NCBI GenBank assembly: GCA_040285825.1
Contig: JAUPSS010000005.1
Location: forward strand, 1,612,001 to 1,676,000
Reading direction: 5' to 3'
Length of the DNA: 64,000 nt
From: Eukaryota sp. TZLM1-RC
Taxonomy: Eukaryota > Protista > Metamonada: BaSk clade
The position numbers and the translations under genes were made by a program. The notes below the pieces were generated by a model that saw only the letters and a program-made list of their open reading frames with translations, made no database searches and was not told where the DNA came from. Shown one piece after another: positions 818 to 58,397 of this stretch (the stretch's first letter is position 1; the number at the start of each line of letters is the position of its first letter).

Positions 818-953
818 TGTTGTACTGTGGACAATTAGTCTAGTACATTTATATTTATATAACATAGTTCACTAGTGATGGCCTTTATAAGGGCCGGTGA
901 AATTCTAATAAATTATTCCTTATTCTTTGTTATCATATATGGATAGAGCATCA
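818..953 (+). repeat. 5' LTR of family-1 element
   Basis: TGTTGTACTG...GAGCATCA; contains TCACTAGTGA palindrome (869-878), TATAA inside GGCCTTTATAAGGGCC and AATAAA. Confidence 0.95.
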
Positions 954-3900
954 TTAATTAATGGCTTGAATAGCCACAATGATAACCCTCCTTCCTCTAT
1001 GAGGAAGAGTAATGTCCCTTCTTTGAAGGAGAACAATCCACCGCCCTCGGTGAGTAATCCTCCACTTACGGAGAGTAATCCTTCCTTCGGGAAGAGTAAT
1101 CCTCCAAAGGAGAGTGAGCTTTCCGCTGAGAAGAGCATTGCCTCTCAGAAAGAAAGCCACCTCCCCAATAAGGAGAGTGAACTTCGCACTGAGGAGAGCC
1201 CTACCTCCCAGAAAGGAAGTCACCTCCCTAATACGGAGAGAGGTAACCACGTCGTTGATGTGTCAGAACTGTACACATACCCCGACAACTCCTCGGAGCT
1301 CCTTCCTTGTAGGAAGAGTTTTCTCACTCCGAGCGAGCAACGGAGATTCAAAGCGTTTGTTATAAGTACCAAATCTGACGCTTGTACAGAAGGTGAAGGA
1401 GGTGAAGGCGAGCAACAGTCTACGACTGGCTCCTCACGTAAAACTCCCTCCTCACCTACTTCTGACATCAGCTCAAGTGAGGAACCTCAAAGTGATTCCA
1501 GAGGATCTCTTAATCAGAACTACAGCAGGAGAGGGGATGAGAGCGATGATGAACCACCTCATACACCCAATCCTCCTAATCCAACTCCTAGTTTCTCATC
1601 TACGGAAAGGACTTCTCAGGGTCTTTACCGCAGGAAATTAGCAAAGGCAGTTGAGGCTGTAACTAGAGATTGCTTATTGGACCTCATCGCCAATCCTCCC
1701 GAAGATATACTGGATTGGAGTGATGACGAATTATTAAAAATGGCTGAGAATGAGTCAGAGCGTCTTGCGGGAGACGTAGACCCAGCCGAATGTGAGAAGG
1801 TGCGACGTGACTATTTAGCGAAACGTTGGCCCTTCCTCTTTGAGGAAGCCCACGGCAAAACACTTGACGACGTCGTCTACGAGAGTTATGATCAAAGTCC
1901 AAATCTTTTAAAGAGATTGGATGATCTTACCGATTCGGCAGTCTCGTGTGGAATGAGTGCAGTCGAGGATTGCTATTTTAGCGCACCTCGTTCAAAGTAT
2001 CAAGCTGCTACTCCCAGGCCTGCCAAATGGCATAGGGATGCAATTGATGACCACAAAATATATTTCAGTGGAAATCAAGAAGCTTACGACAGACTATTTT
2101 GGATAGCTAAAATGTATCCGCATAATCAACAAGGTAGAAACCTTAGAGGCGTCGTAAGGCATTTCCTAGTGGAGAATGTACACCCAAAAGATTCCATTGC
2201 GGACATTCTTATTATGCTTGGGGGCAGATTCGATGAATCTCGAGGTGACACCCTTCAATTTCATACCAAAGAGTCCTATATTAGAGAAATAGGCACTAGG
2301 GTAATTGAATTGAAAGAGCAACGTGTTGGCCCCAACAAGTTAAAACTAGTATACCCTGATGCATGGATGGCTAAACTTAAGGCATGGGTTGATAGCTGGC
2401 CCGACCAAAATGTTTTTGAGAATGTCTTAATAAAGAGCAGTTGCCTTCCATATGATCATAAACTAGCAGGGGTCCCTAGAGGATCTAAAGATGCACCAGA
2501 TTGGGTGGATTTAAGACCACCAGCCCAGACTGTACCTGTGCAGGAGGAACCTCCTAAGACAAGATTTATCATTAAGTTGGGCGAAATATTGCCTTCAGAA
2601 GAGAGGAATATGAACCTATATAGTACACCTTCTGTAGGGCCTCTGGCATCTAGGAGAGCTTTTTGTGAAGCAACTCCTACACAAGCATCTGTTATAAAAT
2701 CATCTATACCCACGCAACCCCTAGGAACGAATGCTCCTAGAGATTCTCTCGTCGACACCCTCGGTCTTTATAGAACTCCTGTAACAGACGAGGAGAAATT
2801 GAGGAAAAGAATAGACGACAAACTGAGATGCCTAGTTAAGTTAAATGAAGCGTTTGACGCCAAGAAGATCTTCGACTTCGTTCTTAACTTTGGCAATTGG
2901 GCTAAAACAGTTAGGGATCGCGATGGACCCACCAGAGCTTTTACGCCGATCACCAAATACGGTCAACCTGTTCATCAGTACGACTTCGTTAGATCTATGT
3001 TCTTCGAAGTGGACCCTTTGTATTTGAGATTTATGATCGAGGGTAAGGTCATCGCAGAATGGCAGAGTTTTTATGGAGGCCGTACAAACGTGTTAGGCAA
3101 CAACCCATCTGACGCCGAAATCTGGGAATATTTGCTACTCAGCACCCAGTACAAATACCCTACCGATGTTGAAAAGGCTTTAAGGTCTGTAAGACCACCT
3201 GAGATCAGTCGCAGAATGACTGCTGAATCTTCGTGGACAGCCTTCATAGAGCAGATCATATATATAATTCGACGCTCTACAATTATGCCTGGAACGGATG
3301 GTAATCCGTCTGTCGTCTACCCAGCAAAGATATTTCTCGAAACTATTAACGACAAAACAAACAATCAATTGATGGACACATATATCATTTGGATTGGCAA
3401 GTTTGATTCGAGTAACGAGAAACTGGGCGATGCGATTTACGATTTAGGTAACGCATTTGTTAACAAGGTCAATAGCCTTGAATCCTCGATCAAAGACATG
3501 AATTTGATAAGAACAGCTTTTGGTGCTCACGCTCCTGCGCAAAAAGGACGAAGCCAGTCAAAAGGTCCTTTTAAGAACCCTAGAGTAAGCAGTCGACCCA
3601 TCCCTTCAGAGCAATGGTGTAACTTATGTAAAACCAATAAACATCCTGAAGAGAAATGTTTTAAATTAGTGGGAAGACCTGGTTCAAAAAAGCGTCAAGG
3701 AGGTGAAAGACGTGATAGAAAACGTAAAAGTAGTAGTAATAAATCAGATGATTATACATCTTTAAACAATAACCTTACAAATAATTCAATCAAATCCATT
3801 TATAAAATGAGCAAAACAGATTCGAATTATAATCACCTAAATCCATTAAAAAGATTTAGAGAGTCATCCAATCCTGTGGGTTCTATCCACAGTGTTAGAC

Positions 3901-6900
3901 TATCCAGGGTAGCAGAGGACCAAGAAAGTTTTAACGGGGAACTTTGGTTAACCTGCACCATAAATAACGTGGAAGTACAAGGCGAAATTGATAATGGAGC
4001 TGCATTTTCAGCATTATCAATGGATTTAGCCTCTAAATGTAATATGACAGTTAATGACAATAAGACTGTCGAATACTTATCGGCAAATGGTATTCGCTCC
4101 ACGACCCTGGGATGTGCAAGTGGTGTTCTTGCTCTAAATGTGGGTAGCTTGGCCACTCAAGTGTTTTTAAGGATCGAATTCCAGATCATTCCTGGTACCA
4201 ATAATTTTTTGATCGGAAGCGACTTATTACAAACCTTGGGGCTACGCACGGAGCACGGTGTTAATATTAATTTGGATCGCGAACATCGCACCATCTTAAA
4301 TGCTGAATGTGAGTTTGATAATAGAATTTGTCAACCAATTAGATTCATTGAACAATTGAGTAATAAATCAGACTTAGGTAATGATTTTGGGCATTCCACA
4401 TTTAGACATGAGTTAGATGAGTTGGGCTGTAGAATATGCCTGGATGACATTAGGGACGAGGAACGCCTAGTCGTGCTACTCGAAAAATATAGAAATGTAT
4501 TTAGTGGGCTACCTCACCCGGATGGAATTGATTGTCAGCCGATGACCATTCCATTTTATGACGAAAGTAAGGTCGTCAAAAGGAAACCTCGAAGATTAAA
4601 CCCAGAAAAACAACGGGTAGCTGAGGAAATTTTTAACGAATTGATCCGTAATGGATTTGCTGTGCCCGCAAAGTCTCAATTCAGTAGTCCCATCTGTTTT
4701 GTGATTTACCCTGATCACAGGAAACCACGATTAACTGGCGATTTTAGTGGTATTGGTGGAGTAAATGATTTAACTAAACCTGTAGAGGCAAATTTGCCCA
4801 GGATTAGCGACATTTTAGAGTTTCTAAGTAAAGCTAATTATATAGCAACTCTAGATTTACCTAAGGCATTTTGGCAGCTCAAAATTGCAGAAGAGGATAT
4901 TGATAAAACTACCGTATCAATTCCCGGGATGTCGATCAGTTTTAAAAGGGCTTGTTTTGGTTTGAAGAACGTTCCTGCAGTCTTCCAAAACATGATGATG
5001 GAAATATTTGATTCTGAGGGCGTATTTATTTATATCGATGATATAATAATAGTAGCTTCGACCCTGGATGAATTTCTATCTAGAGTAGGTACGGTCCTAG
5101 AACGCGCCAAACGTTTTAGAGTTAACCTTGGCCTACCCAAGTGTAGCTTTACCACTTGCAAACATGAAATAAAAATTCTAGGTAGTATTTTTGTAAACAA
5201 AACCCGTTATATAGATGAATCTAGGATTGAGGGACTGATCAACCTACCCAAACCCAGGACATTACCTGAGGTTAGGAGTTTTATGGGTTCGATTAATTAT
5301 ATACGTGACTGGTTGCCAAACTTGTCTGATTTGATAGAACCAATCAACAAATTAACCAGAAACAAACCGTCAAAGATCAAGTGGACTTCTGATCATGACG
5401 AGGCTTTTGGTAAGATTATAAATCTTATCAAAGCAAATATCCCTCTTGAATTGCCCTCAGAAGACAAGCATATTTTAATAAGTGCTGATGCGTCTGATGT
5501 GGCTGTAGGTGGAGTAATATGGCAAGAAGCTAACCCACCTAAAGATCCTACGACACCGCTAATTAAGAGAAAGGTTGTACCTATTGCCTTCTTTAGCAGA
5601 TTATTATCAACTTCACAAAAGAATTGGTCTGTACTTCAGAAAGAGTTGTATGCAATTTTACTAATTCTCACTGACAGTAGTTTAGAAAATTATTTAATTT
5701 CGAGGAAATTAACTATTTTCACTGATCATAGAAATTTAGCATACCTTATATCAGCTCCTGAAAAGAACAGAATTGTGAAGAGGTGGCTACCAATATTGTC
5801 AGAATTCAATTTTGATGTAGTCCACACGGCAGGCGAGGAGAATTATTGGGCAGACATGTTGTCTAGATTGGTTGATACCAAACCCAAAACCCCTCGAGTC
5901 CAACAAGTGAGAAACTTGACACCTCACAGAGTTGAAGAACAATTACCCTATTTAAATTTATTAACTAGAGTTAATTTGTTAAGGGATGATATTACTCAAC
6001 CGTCCACAATTGAGCTACCCACGATCAATAGCTTATCTGCACTGAAAGAAGCAGTTGAGGATACTAAATTTGATTTATTTGACACTTGGATCTCAAAGAT
6101 TAGGCAAGAACAACTTATAGATGTTGATTCAAATCCTGATTATTATAAAGATTACAATTATAATTCAGATATTCAATTGTATACCAACAATCGTGGGAAG
6201 ATTGTTATCCCAGATAGTTTAAAGAAGCAGACTTTAACTATCATTCATGGACATGCAAATGTTGGCCATCCTAGTGTGACGACTAGCGTAAAGAAATTAC
6301 TCAATAGTGATTACTTTTTGGCCCGACATGCGCAAAGACATGATTAATCATATTAAGAGATGCCCAGCATGTCAAAAAGACGGCACATGTGCCTAAAAAA
6401 AGTCATTGAATCATCTGGCTCTCTTTGGGCTGATCGACCTTTTGCACGATTAAATGCAGATACTATTGGACCATTACAACAAGATGATAATGGATTCAAA
6501 TATTTAATAGTTTTCGTAGATTCGTTCACTAGGTATACGATCATTTGCCCTGTAAAGGAATTGAATGCAGTGGAGGCAACCAATCACCTCCTATGGAGTG
6601 TAGTATCAATTTTGGTATCCCACTGTTGATTCATAGTGACAATGGTATTGAATTTGCAAATACCATATTCAAAGGGTTATGCGATTTATTAAACATTGAA
6701 GTAAGTCGTTCACTAACTAGCTTTTCACAAAGCAATGGTTTAGTAGAAAGACGACACAGAGACATCTTACAAAGTCTAAGAAAGATTTTGGTGGACTCTG
6801 GCGATTATAGCAATTGGAGTGAATATATCCCAATTGTACAACTTCAAATCAATTCAACTATTAGTAGAGTTACTGGTCATTCGCCCTACAATTTAATGTT

Positions 6901-7591
6901 TGGTAGCGACCACAGCCCTAGAGCTGATCCTAGTAATATGTTTGAATTAATAAAATCAGCTAATGTTAATATTCCCTTTGTTAAAGATCTTGAAGCAAAA
7001 CTTGAAAGGATTTCAAAGAAGAGAGAAGAGGCAGAGCTCAGGCAAGCTCAACAACTGCCTGAAGTTAACAAACATAGGAACCCTTTTAATAAAGGTGACT
7101 TAGTTTTGCGATTAAAGACTAATGGTAAACTCCATGGTTGCTTCGCTGGCCCTTTTCTCGTTGAAGAAGTTAAATCCAATAAAAGTTTATTACTCAAGAA
7201 TCTTGTCACTGGTTCGATGTCTACGGCAAGTATAAATCATTGTAAACTATACCTTTCAGACTTCCCTAAAGAAGATCTTGATTGGCATAAGAATATTGCT
7301 GCTGGCGATATGGAAGAATCTGTAATCGTTAAAATTATAGATCACTTTGATTACGTAGATTCGAACAATAATAAAGTTCCTTATTGTACCGCAGTTTGGT
7401 ATGGCGGCGAGACTTCGTCTGTCCCAGTTGCTGACGTCAAAAGCACTGAGGCATATCAAACATATTTGCGCTCTATTAGTCCTCACACTACCAGGAAACG
7501 GAAGGTATCTTCTAATTCCAAATCTAAGACTAATTCCCCTGCAGTCAGTACTCGTAGCTCTCGTTCGAGATCTAAGAGAGGGAAAAGGTAG
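939..7591 (+). CDS. Single-ORF Gag-Pol polyprotein (four homopolymer indels at ~6315-6612, probably sequencing errors)
   Basis: CCHC knuckle CNLCKTNKHPEEKC; protease IDNGAAFS; RT LDLPKAFWQ/YIDD; RNase H DASD..KELYA..TDHRNL..ADMLSR; IN HHCC (HGHANVGH..CPAC), D-D-E (ADTIG, SDNG, GLVERRH), GPF motif, chromo-like tail. Removing 3 bases and adding 1 gives one 2217-codon frame. Start could be 939 or 999. Confidence 0.9.
7574..7591 (+). other. Polypurine tract of family-1 element
   Basis: AAGAGAGGGAAAAGG-TAG immediately before the 3' LTR. Confidence 0.9.
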
Positions 7592-11160: not shown

Positions 11161-14100
11161 ATGAGTTTCTTCTCTTTGAATGTTCCTTGTGCTGAACAGG
11201 AGATTTCTGCAGAAGATGAACTGTGTTCTGCTCTTGTTGCGGAGCTTTCTTCCCTGAGTGCTTCTAGTTCCAGGGTTATGTGTAGTTCTTTTACAACTTA
11301 TAGAAATATGTTTTCTGGGGGACTATCTACAAACTCATCTTCTAAACCTGTGTCATCTAGAACTCGGAAAGGGGTTTTCGGGCTCAAACGACATCATTCT
11401 TCTACTTTGAGTCCCAGAAAGAATGTATCTTGTTCACCGGTACCATCATCATCTGGAAAATTAACAGCTGTAATGAGTCCACAACCACAGAAGGCTTCAA
11501 CTCCAATCTTAAGCAGCAAATTTTTTGCAAATTATATCGAGGAGGAACCGAATAGAAACTCAGATATGACTAGAAAGAAGTCAGGTACAGACATCCAATA
11601 TGAAAATAACACAAGTGTCGCTAGTTTTACAGGTTTTGGTGTCACTGCTCCTTCAACCAATGACAAGAAAGCTGATGCTCCTGCTTTTGGTACCACGTCC
11701 ACTAGTGACAATAAGGAAAGTGTTTCTAGCTTTGCAGGTTTTGGTGTCACTGCTCCTTCAACCAATGACAAGAAAGCTGATGCTCCTGCTTTTGGTACCA
11801 CGTCCACTAGTGACAATAAGGAAAGTGTTTCTAGCTTTGCAGGTTTTGGTGTCACTGCTCCTTCAACCAATGACAAGAAACCTGATGCTCCTGCTTTTGG
11901 TACCACGTCCACTAGTGACAATAAGGAAAGTGTTTCTAGCTTTGCAGGTTTTGGTGTCACTGCTCCTTCAACCAATGACAAGAAAGCTGATGCTCCTGCT
12001 TTTGGTACCACGTCCACTACTGACAATAAGGAAAGTGTTTCTAGTTTTGCAGGTTTTGGTGTCACTGCTCCTTCAACCAATGACAAGAAGGCTGATGCTC
12101 CTGCTTTTGGTACCACGTCCACTAGTGACAATAAGGAAAGTGTTTCTAGCTTTGCAGGTTTTGGTGTCACTGCTCCTTCAACCAATGACAAGAAACCTGA
12201 TGCTCCTGCTTTTGGTACCACGTCCACTAGTGACAATAAGGAAAGTGTTTCTAGCTTTGCAGGTTTTGGTGTCACTGCTCCTTCAACCAATGACAAGAAA
12301 GCTGATGCTCCTGCTTTTGGTACCACGTCCACTACTGACAATAAGGAAAGTGTTTCTAGTTTTGCAGGTTTTGGTGTCACTGCTCCTTCAACCAATGACA
12401 AGAAGGCTGATGCTCCTGCTTTTTGGTACCACGTCCACTAGTGACAATAAGGAAAGTGTTTCTAGCTTTGCAGGTTTTGGTGTCACTGCTCCTTCAACCA
12501 ATGACAAGAAAGCTGATGCTCCTGCTTTTGGTACCACGTCCACTACTGACAATAAGGAAAGTGTTTCTAGTTTTGCAGGTTTTTGGTGTCACTGCTCCTT
12601 CAACCAATGACAAGAAGGCTGATGCTCCTGCTTTTGGTACCACGTCCACTAGTGACAATAAGGAAAGTGTTTCTAGCTTTGCAGGTTTTGGTGTCACTGC
12701 TCCTTCAACCAATGACAAGAAAGCTGATGCTCCTGCTTTTGGTACCACGTCCACTAGTGACAATAAGGAAAGTGTTTCTAGCTTTGCAGGTTTTGGTGTC
12801 ACTGCTCCTTCAACCAATGACAAGAAAGCTGATGCTCCTGCTTTTGGTACCACGTCCACTAGTGACAATAAGGAAAGTGTTTCTAGCTTTGCAGGTTTTT
12901 GGTGTCACTGCTCCTTCAACCAATGACAAGAAAGCTGATGCTCCTGCTTTTGGTACCACGTCCACTAGTGACAATAAGGAAAGTGTTTCTAGCTTTGCAG
13001 GTTTTGGTGTCACTGCTCCTTCAACCAATGACAAGAAACCTGATGCTCCTGCTTTTGGTACCACGTCCACTAGTGACAATAAGGAAAGTGTTTCTAGCTT
13101 TGCAGGTTTTGGTGTCACTGCTCCTTCAACCAATGACAAGAAAGCTGATGCTCCTGCTTTTGGTACCACGTCCACTAGTGACAATAAGGAAAGTGTTTCT
13201 AGCTTTGCAGGTTTTGGTGTCACTGCTCCTTCAACCAATGACAAGAAGGCTGATGCTCCTGCTTTTGGTACCACGTCCACTAGTGACAATAAGGAAAGTG
13301 TTTCTAGCTTTGCAGGTTTTGGTGTCACTGCTCCTTCAACCAATGACAAGAAAGCTGATGCTCCTGCTTTTGGTACCACGTCCACTAGTGACAATAAGGA
13401 AAGTGTTTCTAGCTTTGCAGGTTTTGGTGTCACTGCTCCTTCAACCAATGACAAGAAAGCTGATGCTCCTGCTTTTTGGTACCACGTCCACTAGTGACAA
13501 TAAGGAAAGTGTTTCTAGCTTTGCAGGTTTTGGTGTCACTGCTCCTTCAACCAATGACAAGAAAGCTGATGCTCCTGCTTTTGGTACCACGTCCACTAGT
13601 GACAATAAGGAAAGTGTTTCTAGCTTTGCAGGTTTTGGTGTCACTGCTCCTTCAACCAATGACAAGAAACCTGATGCTCCTGCTTTTTGGTACCACGTCC
13701 ACTAGTGACAATAAGGAAAGTGTTTCTAGCTTTGCAGGTTTTGGTGTCACTGCTCCTTCAACCAATGACAAGAAAGCTGATGCTCCTGCTTTTGGTACCA
13801 CGTCCACTAGTGACAATAAGGAAAGTGTTTCTAGCTTTGCAGGTTTTGGTGTCACTCCTCCCTCAACCAATGACAAGAAAGCTGATGCTCCTGCTTTTGG
13901 TACCACGTCCACTAGTGACAATAAGGAAAGTGTTTCTAGCTTTGCAGGTTTTGGTGTCACTCCTCCCTCAACCAATGACAAGAAAGCTGATGCTCCTGCT
14001 TTTGGTACCACATCCACTAGTGACAATAAGGAAAGTGTTTCTAGCTTTGCAGGTTTTGGTGTCACTGCTCCTTCAACCAATGACAAGAAAGCTAATGCTC

Positions 14101-15287
14101 CTGTTTTTGGTACCACGTCCACTAGTGACAATAAGGCAAGTGTTTCTAGTTTTACAGGTTTTGGTGTCACTGCTCCTTCAACCAATGACAAGAAAGCTAA
14201 TGCTCCTGCTTTTGATACCACGTCCACTAGTGACAATAAGGAAAGTGTTTCTAGCTTTGCAGGTTTTGGTGTCACTGCTCCTTCAACCAATGACAAGAAA
14301 GCTAATGCTCCTGTTTTTGGTACCACGTCCACTAGTGACAATAAGGCAAGTGTTTCTAGTTTTACAGGTTTTGGTGTCACTGCTCCTTCAACCAATGACA
14401 AGAAAGCTAATGATCCTGCTTTTGATACCACGTCCACTAGTGACAATAAGGCAAGTGTTTCTAGTTTTACAGGTTTTGGTGTCACTGCTCCTTCAACCAA
14501 TGACAAGAAAGCTGATGCTCCTGCTTTTGGTACCACGTCCACTAGTGACAATAAGGAAAGTGTTTCTAGCTTTGCAGGTTTTGGTGTCACTGCTCCTTCA
14601 ACCAATGACAAGAAAGCTAATGCTCCTGCTTTTGATACCACGTCCACTAGTGACAATAAGGCAAGTGTTTCTAGTTTTACAGGTTTTGGTGTCACTGCTC
14701 CTTCAACCAATGACAAGAAAGCTGATGCTCCTGCTTTTGGTACCACGTCCACTAGTGACAATAAGGAAAGTGTTTCTAGCTTTGCAGGTTTTGGTGTCAC
14801 TGCTCCTTCAACCAATGACACCTTCAGTGCCTCGACCAATCCCAATGGTCTTTTTGCTTATGCTACCAGTTCTCCATTCAGTACCAATTCTGGTGGCATT
14901 GCTCCACCAACACAGCCCAAATCCAATGTCAGTGGTTCTGTTGGTAATATGAGTTTAATTGGAAATTCCAACCCACCTAGTGATATTCAAAACACTACAC
15001 TTTCACCACTTGCTTCCAACTCCTATACTAACCCCAATACATCTGTTCAATCCAATACTACACAGTCCACAAATCCACCTTCTTTTGGAGGAGGGTTTGG
15101 TACCCGTAGTGTCATTGGTGGTGGATCTGCATTTGGTGGAGCTTCAGGATTCAGCGTGGCATCAGCATTTGGTTCAGTTAATAACAACCAGACTTTTGCA
15201 AGCATGATGGGGTCCAACCAATCTCCTTTTGCAACAGCTTCAGCAAATTGTAGTAGTAATCCAGTAACAAGTCCATTTACCAAATAG
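11161..15287 (+). CDS. FG-repeat nucleoporin-like protein (Nup1/Nup153/Nup214-type architecture), ~1373 aa after correcting five single-T insertions
   Basis: 35-aa unit SVSSFAGFGVTAPSTNDKKADAPAFGTTSTSDNKE; FG/SAFG-rich C-terminus; extra T in T-runs at ~12420, 12580, 12896, 13473, 13684; 4127-5=4122 nt = 1374 codons. Confidence 0.8.
11615..14820 (+). repeat. Coding tandem array of 105-bp units (~30.5 copies)
   Basis: AGGTTTTGGTGTCACT recurs 31 times at ~105-bp spacing; units nearly identical, diverging toward the 3' end. Confidence 0.97.
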
Positions 15288-44227: not shown

Positions 44228-45204
44228 CTCCCGTTTTCTTAATTAAAATTATTTACAGTTGTTCTTCCGCTTCCTTTGCGGATAACGCTTCTGCTGAGGC
44301 ACGGGGAGAGCCCGAGCTGCTCTGTTGGATTTAATAGATTTACGTTTCCTTTTATTAGGTTTCTTATTAAATCGTTGATACGCTTCTGAATATCTGATAG
44401 AATGGAGTGGTTCCTCGGTAGTATCTCCAACAAACCATCGCACAGTACAGAAGGGTCCTTGAGCAGTGTTATACTCGTCAAGGATTTCTTCAATGACATG
44501 TTTACCTGAATCTGTGGCTGCGATTGCCCAAAGTAGATCGACATCGTTAGGATCTTCAGCGTTGTAAATTTTACAGTCCCTCTTAGATACTTTTGTTTGT
44601 TCACCAGTCGTCAGGTTCTTTATTAATAAAGTGGAGTTGGAAGAGGTTTCTAAAACCAGATATGGGCCTCACAAAGATCCATGCAATTTATTAGGTTGTT
44701 TAGTCTTTCGAAGAATATAGTCACCAATATTAAATATATTTTCATCTTTGTTTTTCATATGACTGGGTGTGTTTAATAGTTGGTGATGCTCTGCTTCTTC
44801 CCATCTCTTCCGAAGACGATCATTCTTAAATTTGAGGTCTTGCAAAGGTGGTACATTGGATTCAAAATCGAAAATGCCTCCTAGGATGTTAGCAGGGTCT
44901 GATTTTGGGCTGATAGATGACCCAAACATCAGTTCGTGTGGAGTGTGATTTGTTATTCTATTTTTGGTTGAATTAATTAATAGTTGAGTTATTGGTACAT
45001 ATGTGGACCATGAATCGTAGTCGTTGTAATCTATTAATAATTTCCTTATACATTGTATCACATCTCGATGTTTTCTTTCAACCAATCCATTGCTTTCAGA
45101 ATGGTAAGGAATTGAATTAGACACTTCAATTGACATTCTTTGGCAAAGTAATTTAAATATTTCGTTGGCGAACTCAGGGCCATTATCACTATATATAGAC
45201 TTGA

Positions 45205-48200
45205 GTATCGATTCTTGAATATATCCTGTCCTGTACCAAGATAGAGGATACAGCCCAAGCCTACAAGATGTATGACCGTGTAACTCTGAACTTAAACTGC
45301 CGAGATGCTGAAGAGGCCATTTCGAAGTATACCCGTGACTTTATGAGAGTTACCCGTAAGACCCCTACTCTGCAGAGCAATAGCCAAGCTCTTACCCGTA
45401 AATTCCTGAACGGAATCCGTCCTGAACCTTTAAGAAGGTTATTGAAGTCTGAAGCAGAAGACTTCCTTATCTCCTCTATCCCCGAAATCCTAAAGCGTTT
45501 AACCGACCTCTTGCCTGAATATCATAGACCTTATTCCAAACATTACCAACTATTTGAAGATAAACTAGCTAACAAGTATTCTGGAAATCCTAATCGAAGA
45601 AGTAATAACCAAAGGTCCCGAAGAACTCCTAATAGGAGGTATGTAACTCCAAACCAAGAACCACGAAGCACTAGAAGTAATGCTTCCCGATCTACTCAAC
45701 CGCAAGCCCGTACTGATCACTCTAGCAAATTTCCCCTCTCTGAGACCATTTGTAACTATTGCAAGAAACCCGGACATGTAGTCCGCGATTGCCCTGACCC
45801 TAACTGCAAATTGAGCCAAGTTAACAAGAAGAAACCTTATAAGAATCCAAAGAACCCTACTCACTTTAGAACCCATTCTACCCGTAATAAGACCCAATCA
45901 AATTCTATCGTCGAATCCATCAAGGAAGGATTAAAGGAAGACTACTCGATTGACGAAACTTATTATTCTCGTACTGTAACCCACTCCAGCTCTTCTGACA
46001 CTGAAGATTTAGCTTATAACGTATCATTAAACCCTCTTTCAATAAACTCCGATAGCTACTCTGAAGACACTTCATCTCCTAGCCCTAATACCTTTCTCTC
46101 TGACTCCAACTGCTATGATCTGGACGATGTGTTTGAAAATCTAGATTTTATCCTCCCTGGCCGAGATTTCCCCTCATTTCAAGACTTAACGTATGTTGAA
46201 CCTAGCAAACCACAGGTTGCCAAGCAGAAGACACCCTCTTTTCCTGCTCGTTGTGCTAGAAACGAAGTCCTGAAATCTTCTCGGGCAGCCACGATGCAGG
46301 ACGAAAGGGTGAGCTCCTGCGAAGCTTCTGTTGTCGAAAAGGAAACTGATTCTTCACTAACTTCCAGTGACTCTTTAGAGACTGATTTGCCTCAGATACA
46401 TGACCAGAGGAAAGCCCTGAGGGATAACATCCATGATTTCTCGTTGGAGAGAGCAAGTTCTCACCTCGATTCTGATATGGCCCTCCTGGACGCTGACTGT
46501 GCACAACGACCTGGTCCATCTGATAAAAACTCATCTCTCGAAGAATCTTCTGAAAGTTCTATAACTGAATCTGCAAATACGTTAGTCGCAGCTAAAATCT
46601 CCGCCCCAGCTCCTGCCTGTCTGATAATCCCTGATAAGTCTAAGATCTCTTTCACGCTGAAAGAACTGAATCAACCTATGGACAAAAACTTGTTACACCT
46701 GAAGATATTTACCAAACCTGATCACTTTCTGTATGGTATGGTTGACACTGGAGCAACCGTATCCTGTATTTCCGAAGAACTCGCTGAAGTAGCCAAGCTC
46801 CACATTGAGAACCAAACCACCTCTTTAAGTTTAGCTGATGGAAAGCTAATTGATGTTAAGCTAGCTAAAGGAAGATTCGCCTTCATGTTAGGAGGAACCG
46901 CTAAGCTAACCTATGTAACCTTGAGACTCTGTCTATTACCCTGTCCCAACAATTTTATTCTTGGATGTGACGCCCTAAAACGCCTTGGTTTATTAACTGA
47001 AGATTTTCTGTTTATTAATCTTTCAACCCGCAACTTACAGATTCAAGAAGATGAATCTATTCCTGACTGTTTCCTACCTGATTCCCAGAACGTTTGCTCT
47101 CACCACGACCTATCTGATACCTCGACTGCCCCTGAATTCGTCCAAGCTTTAAGTGACGATCTATTAAAGAAGTTACCTGACATTGAGAAAACCAGCTTCA
47201 ATCTCAATGACACTGCTCTGTCTGTAGAAGTCAAGAAACTACTACTTAAGTTCCCTGATATTTTTGCTAAACTACCCGCTCCTGAAGGAATAAAATGTGA
47301 ACCAATGAAGTTAGAATTCTATGATGAATCCTCAATTGTTAGTAAGAAAGCAAGATTCTTACCACCAGACAAGCTAAAGATTGCTAATGAAGAAATTGAT
47401 ACTCTACTGAAAAACGGCTTTGCTGTCCCTTATGATGGTCTATTCGCCTCACCAATCCATCTGGTTTGTGCCCCTGGCAAGGCTCCACGATTAACAGGAG
47501 ATTATTCAGGTCACAAAGGTATCAACGATCTAACCATCCCTGTCCCTGCTGACTTACCCAGAATTACAGATGTCTGTGCCTTCCTGTCTTCTGCTACCTA
47601 TGTCGCAACTCTAGATCTCCCCAAAGCCTTCTGGCAATTGAATCTACGACCAGAGGATCAACCCAAGACCGCCATCGTTATACCTGGAAGGAAGGTAATG
47701 TTTACTCGTGCCGCTTTTGGTTTAAAAAATGTACCAGCTATCTTCCAAAACTTAATGAGGAAAATTTTTGATTGTGACGGAGTTTTTATCTATCTCGACG
47801 ATATAATCGTAGCTGCTGAAAACAAAACAGATTTCTTGAACCGTCTAGAGTATATATTTATGAGAGCCCGAGACTACTGAGTCCGAATTGGCCTTCACAA
47901 GTGCGCTTTTCAGACCAAAGATTACCCAATTCGTGTTTTAGGAACTATTTTTGAGAAAGGAACTCGAAGAATCTGCCCCTCTAGAATAGTAAAGCTGAAT
48001 AAAATTCCAATCCCAACTTCCGTCCCAGAACTACGTTCTTTTGTAGGTGCAATCAACTTCGTTCGAGATTGGTTACCTGCAGTAAGCACTGAACTCGCCC
48101 CGCTCACCGAACTACTTAAAGGATCTCCCCGCAAGATACATCTGAACCAACAACAGATTGAATGCTTTCAGAATATTAAGAAGTTGATATCAAATAGCGT

Positions 48201-50885
48201 GCCATTAGAGCTCCCCGATGACACTTCTCAAATATTAGTCTCTACTGATGCTTCAGAGAAAGGCATCGCCGGCATTATCTGGAAAGAACTTTCCCCTTCC
48301 GAACCTGGAGCCTGTCTTTCAGAAAGAAATGTAGCCCCCCTATCATTTTATTCCAGGATTCTCACCCCTTCCCAGCAACGATGGTCTACTTTACAGAAGG
48401 AATTATTCGCCATCGTAATGACCTTGAACCAGCCAAACCTGTCGTCTTTCTTGCAAACTAAGCACCTCACTTTGTTTTGCGATCACAAAAATTTGTCCTA
48501 CCTGCTCTCTTGCCCTGACTCCAACCGTGTAGTTCTCCGCTGGATCCCTGTATTGCAGTCCTTCTCATTTGATTGTGTACACGTAGATGGACCAAATAAT
48601 CATTGGGCTGATTATTTATCGCGGTCACTCCCTAAGAAAGAAGAAAAACCTGAAAAGAAGAAAACGAAGACCAGAAGTGCTAAAGCAAGTGCGAAGGTAA
48701 ACTCCTTGATCTCTATCGAAGACGGGAAGACCCCCTTCTACCAAGTTACCAGTTATGATCCTGAAGAACACTACAGAGGACTCCCGGCTAGACTAAGAAC
48801 CGCTTCTTACTTAGAAATGGCTTCATATTATAACCCAGACAGTCGATCCTTGCCTTGTCCTTGTCAAGCCGGACATGGTTTCCACTATTGCCCTGGCGAG
48901 GAACGTTTCTGTGAAGTTGTTGATGATAAATATTATACTGAAGTAGGAAACCGTAACCCTGACACCATGCTTACCCATATCAAGGAACCAGTATCACCGA
49001 TCATAGACAAAATCAATGTTTCACAAGCCGTTATCCCCATTGTCCCGATTCCGCTTATCTGTTACAACGCTAAGGCCCTTCTATACCCTCCAAACTTGAT
49101 CTTCCCCTTCTCTCCAATCGAAACCTTTTTCAACCTCCATGCCATTGACACTCCACCTTCATGGTATTCCCTTAATCATTGTGACGCCAGGAGACTCTTG
49201 ACTGCTACCGCCCTTCGTTCCGAATCAGATCCATTCGCCATTCTTAACTCCCTGAAACATTTTTCTTTACTTGATCGTAGGGACATCAATAACATTCAAA
49301 ATGGATCCTCTCCTTATCATTTTATCCTCTCTACTGACATATGCTTTATTTATCAACATGTGTTTCCTCTTTCTAAGTCAAAAGATCCTTACGCCTCTGT
49401 CGCTCATATGTACCCTGATACCCCAATTCACCCAAAGATCCACAATCGTTCTATTCCAATAGCTGATTTTATCCAACACAGCAACTTGAATAACCGCCTT
49501 TATTTCTATGACCCAACTCTCCGTGCTCGCTCATATCTCCCTGAAGTGATTCCGCCTAATGCCTTCTTCATAAAACTTAACTGCTTCCCTGCCTGTGTAA
49601 CCTTAGGACAGTTAATTAACAATATCGACCCCCTGCATCTAGCTCCCCTGCCACTCGAGATGATTCCCTATACTCCTGATCACGCCTCCGATATCTCCTT
49701 TAACCTAGAAACTTTATTTGTTAATGATGATTTATATAAACTCACTGAGAATGATATCCTGACACTACCTATCATCGAATTCTTAAGATATGGAATCTTA
49801 AATCCTAGCCAACGAAGTCCAATTCCTCTCTCTAGGTATAGCCTCCAATTCTACGACGAAATCTACGAAGAAGTCTTGTATTCCCCTTTCCTCAGCTCCC
49901 GATCCTGGTCCGACGCTGATATAGAACATGAACTAGAAATGCAAGATTTGATAGGAGATGAAAACGCCGGATCATCCATCCCCTGTTATATTCCCCTCCT
50001 ATCTCTGGTGCCGCCGTTAACTCTCACCGACCGCTACAGCTTTATAACATTTCCTCCGAGTTCATTCCCGACTACCTAATGTACCCTTTATTTGTTTACA
50101 TCTATCATTATTGTGATGATGGTAATGCGTGCCCCCATCCCGTGGTGACTTACCAATACTCCTATGAAGAAGTAGAAAATAGTCCTATTCCTAAGCAACT
50201 GCTTACCCCAGTTCCCCGTAATTTTTACCTTTCTTCGAAACTCAACTCATGCAACACCTGCCCACACGTAGATAGTATTCACAGATCCTTGCTAGACGAA
50301 CCCTCGTTAGCTAATTACATCCGAACAACCAAGCCTTTAGACACCATACGGTATAACTTCAAAATCTCTTTCTACGATAAAGAACTCCAAGCCGTAGTCC
50401 TTCCCAGACAGCTCCCCGATGGAACTTATAGTAAAGAAATGCACTCCCTCGTTCCATTCCCAGACCCTGATCAGTCCATTGAATCAGTTTGCTCGATTGT
50501 AAATGTAACCACGAGATCTCAAGTGCCCCGAGAAGAAACTGAAGAAGACACTCAAGAAGTTGACCCTGAACCCAACACACCTGAAACCACTTCATCAGAC
50601 TTCATCGACCAGAACTCTGCCCACTCTCCTGCTGAAGCTTTCTTAAGGAAGATCTTTAATGAACAACAGAAGTTGTTAGATGATGACGAACTTTTCTCCA
50701 ACTGTGTAATTGATGAAAAGACCGGCCTTAAACTAACTCCAGATAAGAAGATCATTTTGTGGTCCGATGGCACCCAATTGTCCCAACCTGTAGATACCGT
50801 TAAGAATACTGTAGCTTTCCAACGGTACTCAAAGATGATGAATCTTGACAAACCCAGAAGAAGAGGAAAGAGAAAGAAGAGGTAG
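45205..50885 (+). pseudogene. Family-2 Gag-Pol with ~600-aa uncharacterised insert between RNase H and the pre-integrase linker
   Basis: One frame from 45205 with an in-frame TGA at 47878 and one probable C-run frameshift near 49995; ends KKIIL/WSDGTQLSQPVDTVKNTVAFQRY..RRRGKRKKR*. Confidence 0.8.
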
Positions 50886-51059
50886 TGTTGGCTCCTCGCC
50901 ATAGTTAGTTGTTTTGTCCCTTACAGTAATCACGTGATGCCACGTCATCACGTATTTATTTAGACTGTTGTATTATTTCATTTGATTATTCCCACACCTT
51001 GTAATAAACACCCCGTTTTCCTGTTTATTACCTCGATGCATCCTCATACTAGCCCAACA
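50886..51059 (+). repeat. Putative 3' LTR of family-2 element (174 bp)
   Basis: Follows PPT; TGTTGG...CCAACA terminal inverted repeat; AATAAA; CRE homology resumes exactly at 51060; no second copy in window. Confidence 0.75.
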
Positions 51060-52782
51060 ACAAACTGATATTTCACATGTTCCACTCTACCTAACTGTGC
51101 CAAAGGTTCTTCATATTTTTTTATCTTCTTTTTTTCGGCGTTAGATAACGGCGAGTCAGCGGAATACACTAAACGAGCAGCAGAATTTTTGCAAACATCC
51201 ACTGAGACAACGTCTACAACATTGAGAACACCATCGATCCCTGGAGCTACTAAATCTGCCCTTCTTTTACCAAAGGAATCATCAGTTTGATCTGAAGACA
51301 GCTTACGTACTAGTGGCTCAATAAATGCCTCTATATTGAAACTTTTGCACATGGCATATAATTGATCACGAACTGAGTCATGAACAAGTGAGCGATAAGT
51401 TATAAAATACTTACAGTTTAAAATATGGGAAAGCGTAACAACACTCTTGCAGCGACAAATTAAATCATTTGGTAATGAACAAGGCCATAGAAAACATCTC
51501 ATTCTCATTGCAGTGGTCCATTGGTGATCATTAAGTAGAAGGCCATAAATGTTGGGAATTTGGGAGATTAGGCAACTTGAGCAACTGTCTTCAAGATCAA
51601 TCAAAAAGTTTGCAAAAACGGGATTTTTTTCCTTAGCCAAGCTAAGACGTACAATATAATCCAAGTTTTTTAAAACTTTCAAGATTTTTTTCTGCAATTT
51701 TGCAAAAGTCAGTGGTAAGGAGAGCAAGCTTCTTGAAGGAAGTTCCACAATATCAGAGGGGAAACATTTAGCCCAAATATTGGGTGAAAGAGTTTCAATT
51801 TCCTGTTGCAATGAAATAAGATAAGAGCTGCCACAATTTTTCAATGAGATGAATTTTTCAGGAAAACGATTCACAAATTCATAAATAAAATTCTTTCCAC
51901 CTCCAATAAAGGCAGCTTTACAAAGGTAGCTTGATTTATGAAAATCAACACCACCAAAATTTGTACCACAAAAAATGTGGCTTCGTAACTGAGATGCATC
52001 AATTTCCAATAATTTTGCTAAAAAATTGGTTCTTTGTTCATTAAAAATGCGACAAAACTCCAAAGAAATTGATGGTGATGTTGATCTCAAAATATGAGTA
52101 AATTTTCCAGAATAACAGATTTTTAGGAAAAGAATTTCAAATGTTTCTCAATATTTAAATTTTCTATTGATTCTAATTCATTTCCAAATTGAGTCAACAG
52201 AGTCGAAAGTTGGCTTTTGACTTCATCAATATTTCCGAGATAACAACCCAAAAACGAAAACCAGACTGATCATAATTGATAAAGGGGACATTGACATCAT
52301 TAATGAAAAAAATCAATTGGTTCATGGCCAATAATCAAACATTTGGAGATATTCAATGAGAGACCAATATCTTCATAACGCTGTTGAATAAAAGTTGCTA
52401 TTTGTTTCAGAATTGTAATAGGAGCAAATACAGAAATGTCATCCATATATGCTACAATATCTATTTCTGGGAATTTTTCTTTCAATTCGCACATTAATGG
52501 ATGAATTGCCAGACAAAAGAAAAAAGGACCAAGTGGATCACCTTGTTTAACACCTGAAGACGAAAGCAGGTCAAAGTTTTCATAGACCAATGTGGATGAT
52601 TTTCCATAAAATGAAAAGAAAAAAGGCTCAACTTCAGGAAAATGCTTTCGCAGCAAAGGTAAAATGGAAGAACGAGATACAGAATTGAAAGCATTCTTAA
52701 AATCTAAATTGAAGATGTAATTAGAATCACTAGAATTAAAAAACACATCCGACGAAAGAGCAGCAGAAGAAGCACCATCAAC
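51060..52782 (-). mobile_element. CRE-like subfamily A copy nested in element 3, 3' end cut by element 2
   Basis: VDGASS..LDFKNAFNSV..GVKQGDPLGP..AYMDD; CRC..HILNCKY..HDSVRD; RRADLV..VVDV..AEKKKIKKY. Confidence 0.92.
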
Positions 52783-57385: not shown

Positions 57386-58397
57386 GTAAGTAATGTTTCC
57401 CCTTTGATATTGTGGAACTTCCTCCAAGAAGCTTGCTCTCCTTACCACTGACTTTTGCAAAATTGCAGAAAAAAATCTTAAAAGTTTTAGAAAATTTGGA
57501 TTATATTGTACGTCTTAGGTTGGCTAAAGAAAAAAATCCCGTTTTTGCAAACTTTTTGATTGATCTTGAAGACAGTTGCTCAAGTTGCCTAATCTCCCAA
57601 ATTCCCAACATTTATGGCCTTCTGCTTAATGATCACCAATGGACCACTGCAATGAGAATGAGATGTTTTCTATGGCCTTGTTCTTGACCAAATGATTTAA
57701 TTTATCGCTGCAAGAGTGTTGTTACGCTTTCCCATATTTTAAACTGTAAGTATTTCATAACTTATCGCTCAATTGCTCATGACTCAGTACGTGATCAATT
57801 CTATGCCATGTGCAAAAGTTTCAATATAGAGGCATTTATTGAGCCATTAGTACGTAAGCTGTCTTCAGATCAAACTGATGATTCCTTTGGTAAAAGAAGG
57901 GCAGATTTAGTCGCTCCAGAAATCGATGGTGTTCTCAATGTTGTAGATGTTGTCTCAGTTGATGTTTGCAAAAATTCTGCTGCTCGTTTAGTGCATTCCG
58001 CTGATTCGCCGTTATCTAACGCCGAAAAAAAGAAGATAAAAAGTATGAAGAACCTTTGGCACAGTTAGGTAGAGTGGAACATGTGAAATATCAGTTTGTG
58101 CCATTTGCAATTTCTCTTTTTGGCAATATTGGACCGTCAGGGTTGCACTTTTTGAAAACTTCAAAAAAGTGTTACTGAATAGGTCTGGTAAAACAATGAA
58201 TTCCACTTTCTGGTTAAATAGAATTGTTTTTTGCATTTTCAAGTCTATTCCAACAATGATTTCAAAGGCACTTTTAGCTATTGGTGTAGAATATGAACGT
58301 AATGCTGTGAGTAGGTTTAGTAATAGTGACGCTTGTTTGGAGGATATTGAATTCTAGATAGATTTTTTTTTCTCAATAAATATTCCAGTTAAAAAAA
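57386..58397 (+). mobile_element. 5'-truncated CRE-like subfamily A copy with poly(A) and 15-bp TSD
   Basis: Near-identical to reverse complement of 51060-51770; AATAAA + A8; AGAATGTAATTAAAT at 57371-57385 and 58398-58412. Confidence 0.93.

Follow-up and report, generated by a model that had tools for sequence, protein, structure and literature searches.

Non-primate lentiviruses and some other retroelements encode a dUTPase in pol, which in non-primate lentiviruses lies between RNase H and integrase. Retroelement dUTPase is an accessory protein produced within Gag-Pol (PMC2427051). In the plant Ty3/gypsy elements Ogre and Retand an extra archaeal-type RNase H (aRH), located between the element's own RNase H and its integrase, is diagnostic of the lineage (PMC6317226). 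Extra Pol domains of this sort (dUTPase, the second RNase H, chromodomains) have each exposed a pressure that retroelements meet in their host. Here we report on a long additional stretch of Pol at this position in a Ty3/gypsy-type long terminal repeat (LTR) retrotransposon family, called family 2, of Skoliomonas, an anaerobic, free-living flagellate of the metamonads that has only lately been brought into culture and whose organelles are extremely reduced. One copy occupies about 45211-51059 on the forward strand of the window, the 64,000-nucleotide stretch of contig JAUPSS010000005.1 analyzed here (assembly GCA_040285825.1, Eukaryota sp. TZLM1-RC, an organism described as Skoliomonas; PMC11603281), and coordinates below refer to the window unless another locus is named. 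The insert is, with high probability, a real, selected, orphan region of Pol that has been inherited vertically within one Ty3/gypsy-type lineage of Skoliomonas.

In the window copy the insert covers about 2014 nucleotides (nt; 48626-50639), or about 671 codons, between the end of RNase H (WADYLSR, nt 48605-48625) and the linker motif FLRKIFNEQQ at nt 50640. The original prediction, drawn from the sequence of the window, had described an extra in-frame Pol stretch between RNase H and integrase, and the open reading frames (ORFs), motifs and frames lie where it placed them; the long stretch is present, and is somewhat larger than the roughly 600 amino acids (aa) that had been given. The second family in the window, family 1 (ORF 927-6347), has 73 aa from WADMLSR to WISKIRQEQL, in agreement with the predicted ~70. 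The RNase H frame stays open until 50079, and another is open between about 50001 and the Pol stop (50885); when three other copies are aligned, the switch from one frame to the other is seen to be a 1-nt gap within C-rich sequence (49992-49996), the only break in the insert's frame and the single C-run frameshift that had been expected. Codon usage had been said to be shared with the rest of the element, and this too holds: third-position frequencies are 0.32-0.34 for C and 0.10 for G in the insert, and 0.26-0.27 and 0.13-0.16 elsewhere in the element, a likeness which argues for long residence.

At least 15 loci in the TZLM1-RC genome have the insert at the same place in Pol, a count that combines the genomic loci retrieved with distinct proteins on other contigs, and the insert is thus not unique to the window copy. 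Its carriers form three subfamilies with insert lengths of 667 aa (2a: P0001, P0002, P0003), 573-584 aa (2b: P0009, P0010, P0012-P0018) and 493 aa (2c: P0019), all from GCA_040285825.1. Every member is flanked either by RNase H (...WADYLSR) on the left or by FL.K.F.EQQK with the integrase HHCC finger and rve core on the right. A single gene model, P0003 (locus L005), extends from reverse transcriptase (RT) and RNase H through the complete insert to the beginning of integrase, and the whole insert is free of stops in four copies (L005, L003, L006 and L009). The subfamilies are connected by phmmer, which links 2a with 2b at E 7.5e-16 exactly over the region we call the core; P0009, P0010 and P0011 are distant matches with 31-35 % identity over residues ~160-338 of the 2a query, and a search started from P0009 recovered the populous 2b (P0012-P0018, P0010) as well as 2c (P0019). 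Word-based protein searches found the same stretch in further gene models, all of them from Eukaryota sp. TZLM1-RC. Between subfamilies, identity is 27-34 % for the insert and 34-45 % for its core, and 77-84 % for RNase H and 54-62 % for the integrase N-terminus. The insert is constrained yet fast-evolving, as gag and accessory proteins are.

Individual copies are mosaic, as a comparison of 45748-50752 with L002 and L005 shows. The proportion of synonymous differences between the window copy and L002 falls from 0.85 in RT to 0.16 in the pre-integrase linker, and between the window copy and L005 the nonsynonymous distance (dN) is 0.02 over RT-RNase H and 0.10 over the insert. Because divergence varies along the copies in this way, the comparison suggests that subfamily members recombined during reverse transcription. 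Several of the GenBank gene models for L001, L005, L006, L007 and L009 are not colinear with the DNA and contain short "introns", apparently placed over stops or frameshifts (e.g., the in-frame stop at L007 9216-9218), so that the annotated proteins of these five loci slightly misrepresent the copies.

Selection on the insert was measured as the ratio of nonsynonymous to synonymous divergence (dN/dS) by the Nei-Gojobori method on nucleotide-level alignments in the ancestral frame. Over the whole insert dN/dS is 0.12 between the window copy and L002 (574-575 codons; RNase H 0.10 and gag 0.24 for the same pair), 0.11 between the window copy and L005, 0.19 between L003 and L006 (core 0.145) and 0.21 between L003 and L009 (core 0.158), against 1.1-2.1 when these whole-insert codons are read in either of the wrong frames. 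Along the Pol region, the ratio is 0.04-0.10 in the RT C-terminus and RNase H (window copy against L002 and L005), 0.20 at 48700-49140, 0.06-0.16 in the core, 0.05-0.07 at 49721-49990 and 0.16-0.17 in the C-terminal module. All six insert indels that separate L003 from L009 are multiples of three. Neutral evolution, which the original prediction had named as an outcome that would count against it, is not what these copies show: the insert is under purifying selection at the protein level.

The carriers are Ty3/gypsy (Metaviridae-type) elements with the domain order gag(CCHC)-protease-RT-RNase H-integrase in one direction by Pfam, and in L001, L002, L005, L007 and L009 the insert is followed by Integrase_H2C2 and rve. 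Their LTR pairs are 145-182 bp long and 97.7-100 % identical, with ends TGTTGG...CCAACA; the full elements have 4-bp target duplications (GCTT, CAAA, GTAG), a primer-binding site adjoining the 5' LTR and, ahead of the 3' LTR, a polypurine tract. The two LTRs are 100 % identical in L003 (2b) and L007 (2c), 98.4 % in L002 and 97.7 % in L005. Since the LTRs of L003 and L007 are identical and the elements have TG..CA ends and 4-bp duplications, insert-bearing elements have moved recently. Three of the four full elements (L003, L007 and L002) lie near a divergently oriented host gene, with 0.1-1.1 kb between the element and the 5' end of the gene; these are too few for a promoter preference.

An exhaustive phmmer search with the 2a insert against 1.84 billion protein representatives gave eight matches, all from this same genome, and each one either has RNase H or integrase beside it or is a piece of such a copy. 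Neither this search nor the word-based ones found a paralogue outside the context of a transposable element (TE), as a captured host gene might have left behind, and no host gene or other TE among the representatives matched. Together with the presence in other copies and the non-neutral evolution, this means that all three outcomes named in the original prediction as refuting it were looked for and not found. Profile hidden Markov models (HMMs) of the core and the C-terminal module, run against six-frame translations of the window and nine loci, matched family-2 copies only, with no match in family 1 or other TEs. Pfam searches of the window ORFs, the two halves of P0003 and 17 alignment members, at E up to 10, returned chance-level matches only (SEC-C, which scored best, and CPCFC, DPF1-3_N and Arb1), and profiles A2 and A4 matched no PDB sequence at E up to 10. 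The earlier description of a long-resident, genuine part of Pol in which no known domain is recognizable is thus supported. We found no paper on retrotransposons or mobile elements of Skoliomonas, and none on an unnamed domain located between RNase H and integrase.

Specific candidates fared no better. A degenerate second RNase H was considered from the resemblance of FVLSTDL to ILVSTDAS; compared by hhalign with the RNase H of the element itself, the core reached a probability of 0.03 %. Duplication of the element's own domains was likewise rejected, with at most 0.2 % for the core and the C-terminal module against RNase H, integrase and gag-protease-RT profiles and against each other. BLASTP of the N-terminal against the C-terminal half revealed no internal repeat. 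No RNase H family, such as the aRH of Tat, Ogre and Retand, was found in the insert of any of the 17 members at E up to 10, and the retroelement dUTPase (PF00692) gave no match at the same threshold and none in PDB with profiles A2 and A4. Because the Pfam, PDB and hhalign comparisons came back empty, the insert is neither the extra RNase H of Ogre/Retand nor a dUTPase. In the ESM Atlas a 2a piece reached 0.84 to a bacterial fatty-acid isomerase, which is under the trust level, and the 2b core reached nothing.

A multiple alignment resolves the insert into a series of parts, all on the forward strand in the window. Directly 3' of RNase H lies a Lys-rich basic linker (KK..KKKTKTR..., 48626-48699), which is K-rich and reads ...KKTR in 2a, 2b and 2c, followed by a segment of ~100-150 aa (48700-48996) that is specific to 2a and absent or unalignable in 2b and 2c. 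The core (48997-49671, about 190 profile positions) matches its HMM at E 2e-68 over codons 373-597 of the frame starting at 47881, and is followed by a variable, Pro-rich middle (49672-50060) in which the 1-nt gap shifts the frame. Next comes a C-terminal module of ~160 aa (50061-50522; HMM match E 1e-36) present in all three subfamilies, then an acidic, Ser/Thr-rich linker (50523-50639), and finally the pre-integrase linker FLRKIFNEQQK...GLKLTPDKKII (50640-50752), homologous to WISKIRQEQL...GKIVI of family 1 and leading in other copies directly into the integrase HHCC finger and rve core. The short linker of family 1 starts ...PYLNLL, and because this resembles the WNYLNL that opens the core region of 2b and 2c, the expansion seems to lie between two older linker motifs.

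In composition the insert has about 10 % Pro and 2 % Gly, with raised His and Tyr. Invariant or near-invariant motifs of the core are ALR, LNS.KHF, FVLSTDL, NDLIQ..NWN.R.YF, YLP.V.P.NA, LN, TLG.LI and HL.PLP..M.PF; most of its invariant positions are hydrophobic or structural, and no acid/His/Cys triad stands out. The C-terminal module is marked by HY.DD...CP, C.H..I..LL.D and ...RSQ. The bracketing, cleavage-site-like motifs noted in the original prediction are less general than the modules: AKVNSL is confined to 2a, and of ...VTTRSQ only RSQ is common to all subfamilies. The Cys/His clusters it listed as possible metal-binding sites are present, and the metal-binding idea itself is weak, because the clearest of them, the first cluster CPCQAGHGFHYC (CPC...HYC...C, nt 48856-48912), lies in the segment missing from 2b and 2c and matches SEC-C (PF02810) at E 0.1-0.15 (12.4 bits against a cut-off of 20.4) in 2 of the 17 members. 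Just upstream of the integrase linker, 2b and 2c have in place of the acidic linker of 2a an I(E/D)ISSDSD-type run, in which Ser and Asp come after a hydrophobic triplet (MIEISSDSDS, IIEISSSSDVD, IYISSDSSDE; about positions 620-640 in P0009 and 515-530 in P0019), which resembles a SUMO-interaction motif and is absent in 2a.

We infer that the insert serves the element's own cycle. Found in three diverged subfamilies, under purifying selection and in recently transposed carriers, the insert is retained because the element needs it. As to how it might serve, we favor an adaptor without enzymatic activity that is physically tied to integrase, whether by extending that enzyme at its N-terminus over a long stretch or as a protein released beside it. 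The adaptor would interact with a host factor or with chromatin, or else help the pre-integration complex into the nucleus, by analogy to chromodomains and to the targeting domains of Ty5 and Ty1. An adaptor is favored because the region abuts integrase, evolves fast, is without a catalytic signature and has charged linkers on both sides. Taken as a whole, the statement that this is a real translated Pol region with an integrase-coupled adaptor role is in our judgment somewhat probable; the specific proposal of a non-catalytic, integrase-coupled adaptor is tentative, and we would not be surprised to see it replaced. It is possible, if rather doubtful, that the core (~190 aa) and the C-terminal module (~160 aa) constitute an undescribed protein family with a new fold, invented or captured by one metamonad lineage and made indispensable, perhaps as an N-terminal integrase adaptor that reads host chromatin or a SUMO-type signal, the latter being suggested by the I(E/D)ISSDSD run that 2b and 2c carry just before the integrase linker. 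If so, a deep-branching eukaryote would harbor a new solution to the control of integration.

Several observations weigh against this interpretation. The phmmer matches provide no homologue outside the genome. There is no sign of targeting to tRNA genes: none of seven loci contains a tRNA gene, and the sole tRNA gene of the window is 12 kb away. The copies sit in ordinary intergenic or TE-rich DNA, with no target-site bias seen. AlphaFold2 gave a mean pLDDT of 26.1 from an alignment of 6 rows and 32.5 from one of 17, the sole better-scored block being the FL.K.F.EQQK helix at about 65, and because both runs are low we use the word "domain" on the strength of conservation. Some polar positions of the core are invariant (STD, ND, NWN, R, H), which leaves an enzyme conceivable. 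Finally, a 2b-type copy, P0020 (L008 4001-8130, JAUPSS010000007.1), encodes protease-RT-RNase H-integrase in a long frame and has lost ~1.4 kb of the insert in genomic DNA, keeping only about the first 25 and last 100 insert residues; as a single dead-end deletion it says little for or against.

The alternative that survives best is that the element's own protease cuts the region from Pol at the basic and acidic linkers, giving a free accessory protein of ~60-75 kDa that could be, for example, particle-associated or anti-silencing. Charged low-complexity linkers flank the conserved modules in all three subfamilies, with RSQ before the acidic linker in each, and the fast divergence between subfamilies is like that of gag and accessory proteins. 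However, no cleavage site is recognizable from the sequence, AKVNSL occurs only in 2a, and an integrase-fused arrangement fits the sequence equally well; we regard the released protein as unlikely, though a serious contender. That the core is instead a new or unrecognizably diverged enzyme added to Pol, as a dUTPase or second RNase H has been elsewhere, is improbable. Its position has a precedent in the extra RNase H that Ogre and Retand encode between RNase H and integrase (PMC6317226), the original prediction having pointed to the additional RNase H of Tat elements, and the core has the polar invariants listed above, but they form no recognizable catalytic motif, the 17 members have only chance-level Pfam matches at E up to 10 and no PDB sequence match, and the hhalign probability against the element's own RNase H is 0.03 %.

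Slightly more improbable still is a mainly unstructured spacer, in which length or linear motifs (nuclear localization, SUMO-interaction-like I(E/D)ISSDSD, Pro-rich ligands) rather than a fold would be selected. The very low confidence of both AlphaFold2 runs, the Pro and Gly content and the range in length from 493 to 667 aa are consistent with a spacer, but any orphan whose alignment is shallow would be expected to score a low pLDDT, and a core of ~190 aa that can be aligned at 34-45 % across subfamilies, with many invariant hydrophobic positions and a dN/dS of 0.06-0.16, is hard to reconcile with one. Junk, a nested fragment of a host gene or TE with chance read-through and neutral decay, is hardly credible: the window copy itself is dead (5'-truncated, with a stop, a frameshift and an integrase deletion), but no host gene or TE matches among 1.84 billion representatives, at least 15 loci from three subfamilies have the insert in the same place, and dN/dS is 0.11-0.21 against ~1-2 in the wrong frames, with indels in frame only.

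In the window copy the gag (CCHC)-protease-RT part spans 45211-47880 (+) and is 5'-truncated, as tblastn with the gag N-terminus of L002 matches from 45211 on only; within it, ORF 45268-47880 encodes the CCHC knuckle, aspartyl protease and RT (Pfam zf-CCHC, aspartyl protease and RVT_1) and ends at an in-frame stop (47878-47880). Past this stop the same frame resumes through the RT C-terminus and RNase H (47881-48625, +, to WADYLSR; RT_RNaseH E 4e-18, RT_RNaseH_2 E 3e-11). Downstream of the insert the copy lacks about 1.16 kb of integrase (its junction 50752|50753 aligns with L002 13885|15047), and because of this loss the extreme C-terminus of Pol (50753-50885, +) is fused straight onto the pre-integrase linker. 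The 3' LTR (50886-51059, +), with 86-88 % identity to both LTRs of L005 and of L002, is the only LTR the copy keeps. With gag truncated at its 5' end, one stop, one frameshift and integrase deleted, the window copy is dead.

Other repeats were noted in the window. Since the family-2 3' LTR ends at 51059, the copy has no 5' LTR and its gag is truncated at about 45211, the repeat pair 44093-44226/57114-57237 (87 % identical) is not a pair of family-2 LTRs and belongs to something else. The truncated 5' end is adjoined, in opposite orientation, by a C-terminal piece of integrase from another LTR element (...HSESNGLVERKHR..., 44669-45136, -). A 709-bp inverted duplicate with 96 % identity (51060-51768 and 57392-58099) begins exactly where the family-2 3' LTR ends. 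Two ORFs of 348 aa, at 51044-52090 (-) and 6545-7591 (+), are without Pfam match and resemble parts of another repeated element, and 11584-14820 is a tandem array of about 30 copies with a 105-bp period, 94-98 % identity and long ORFs on both strands.

The insert makes up about one quarter of the element's coding capacity and was left unplaced by the sequence tools used, yet it is selected and is carried by recently active copies. It is thus a defined, testable orphan protein family, and may mark this retrotransposon lineage in other metamonad genomes. Set beside described systems, its resemblances are partial. The 2a cluster PCPC-x8-YC resembles the SEC-C motif C-x-C-x8-C-(C/H), but its fourth ligand is out of place, the match stands at E 0.1-0.15, and 2b and 2c lack the motif. 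Like dUTPase the insert is a candidate accessory protein within Pol, but dUTPase is a known enzyme, ~130 aa long, that was acquired from cells, and the insert has neither a dUTPase match nor a cellular homologue. With the aRH it shares the status of a lineage-specific extra domain encoded by Pol in the same position between RNase H and integrase, whereas the aRH is a recognizable RNase H of ~130-150 aa and the 493-667 aa found here include no RNase H family. Chromodomains of chromoviruses and the targeting domains of Ty5 and Ty1 lie C-terminal to integrase and are short, the chromodomain having a known fold, while the insert is N-terminal, ten-fold longer and has no target-site bias seen; by the analogy we propose, it may nevertheless be viewed as belonging with them, as a lineage-specific, fast-evolving and non-catalytic addition beside integrase.

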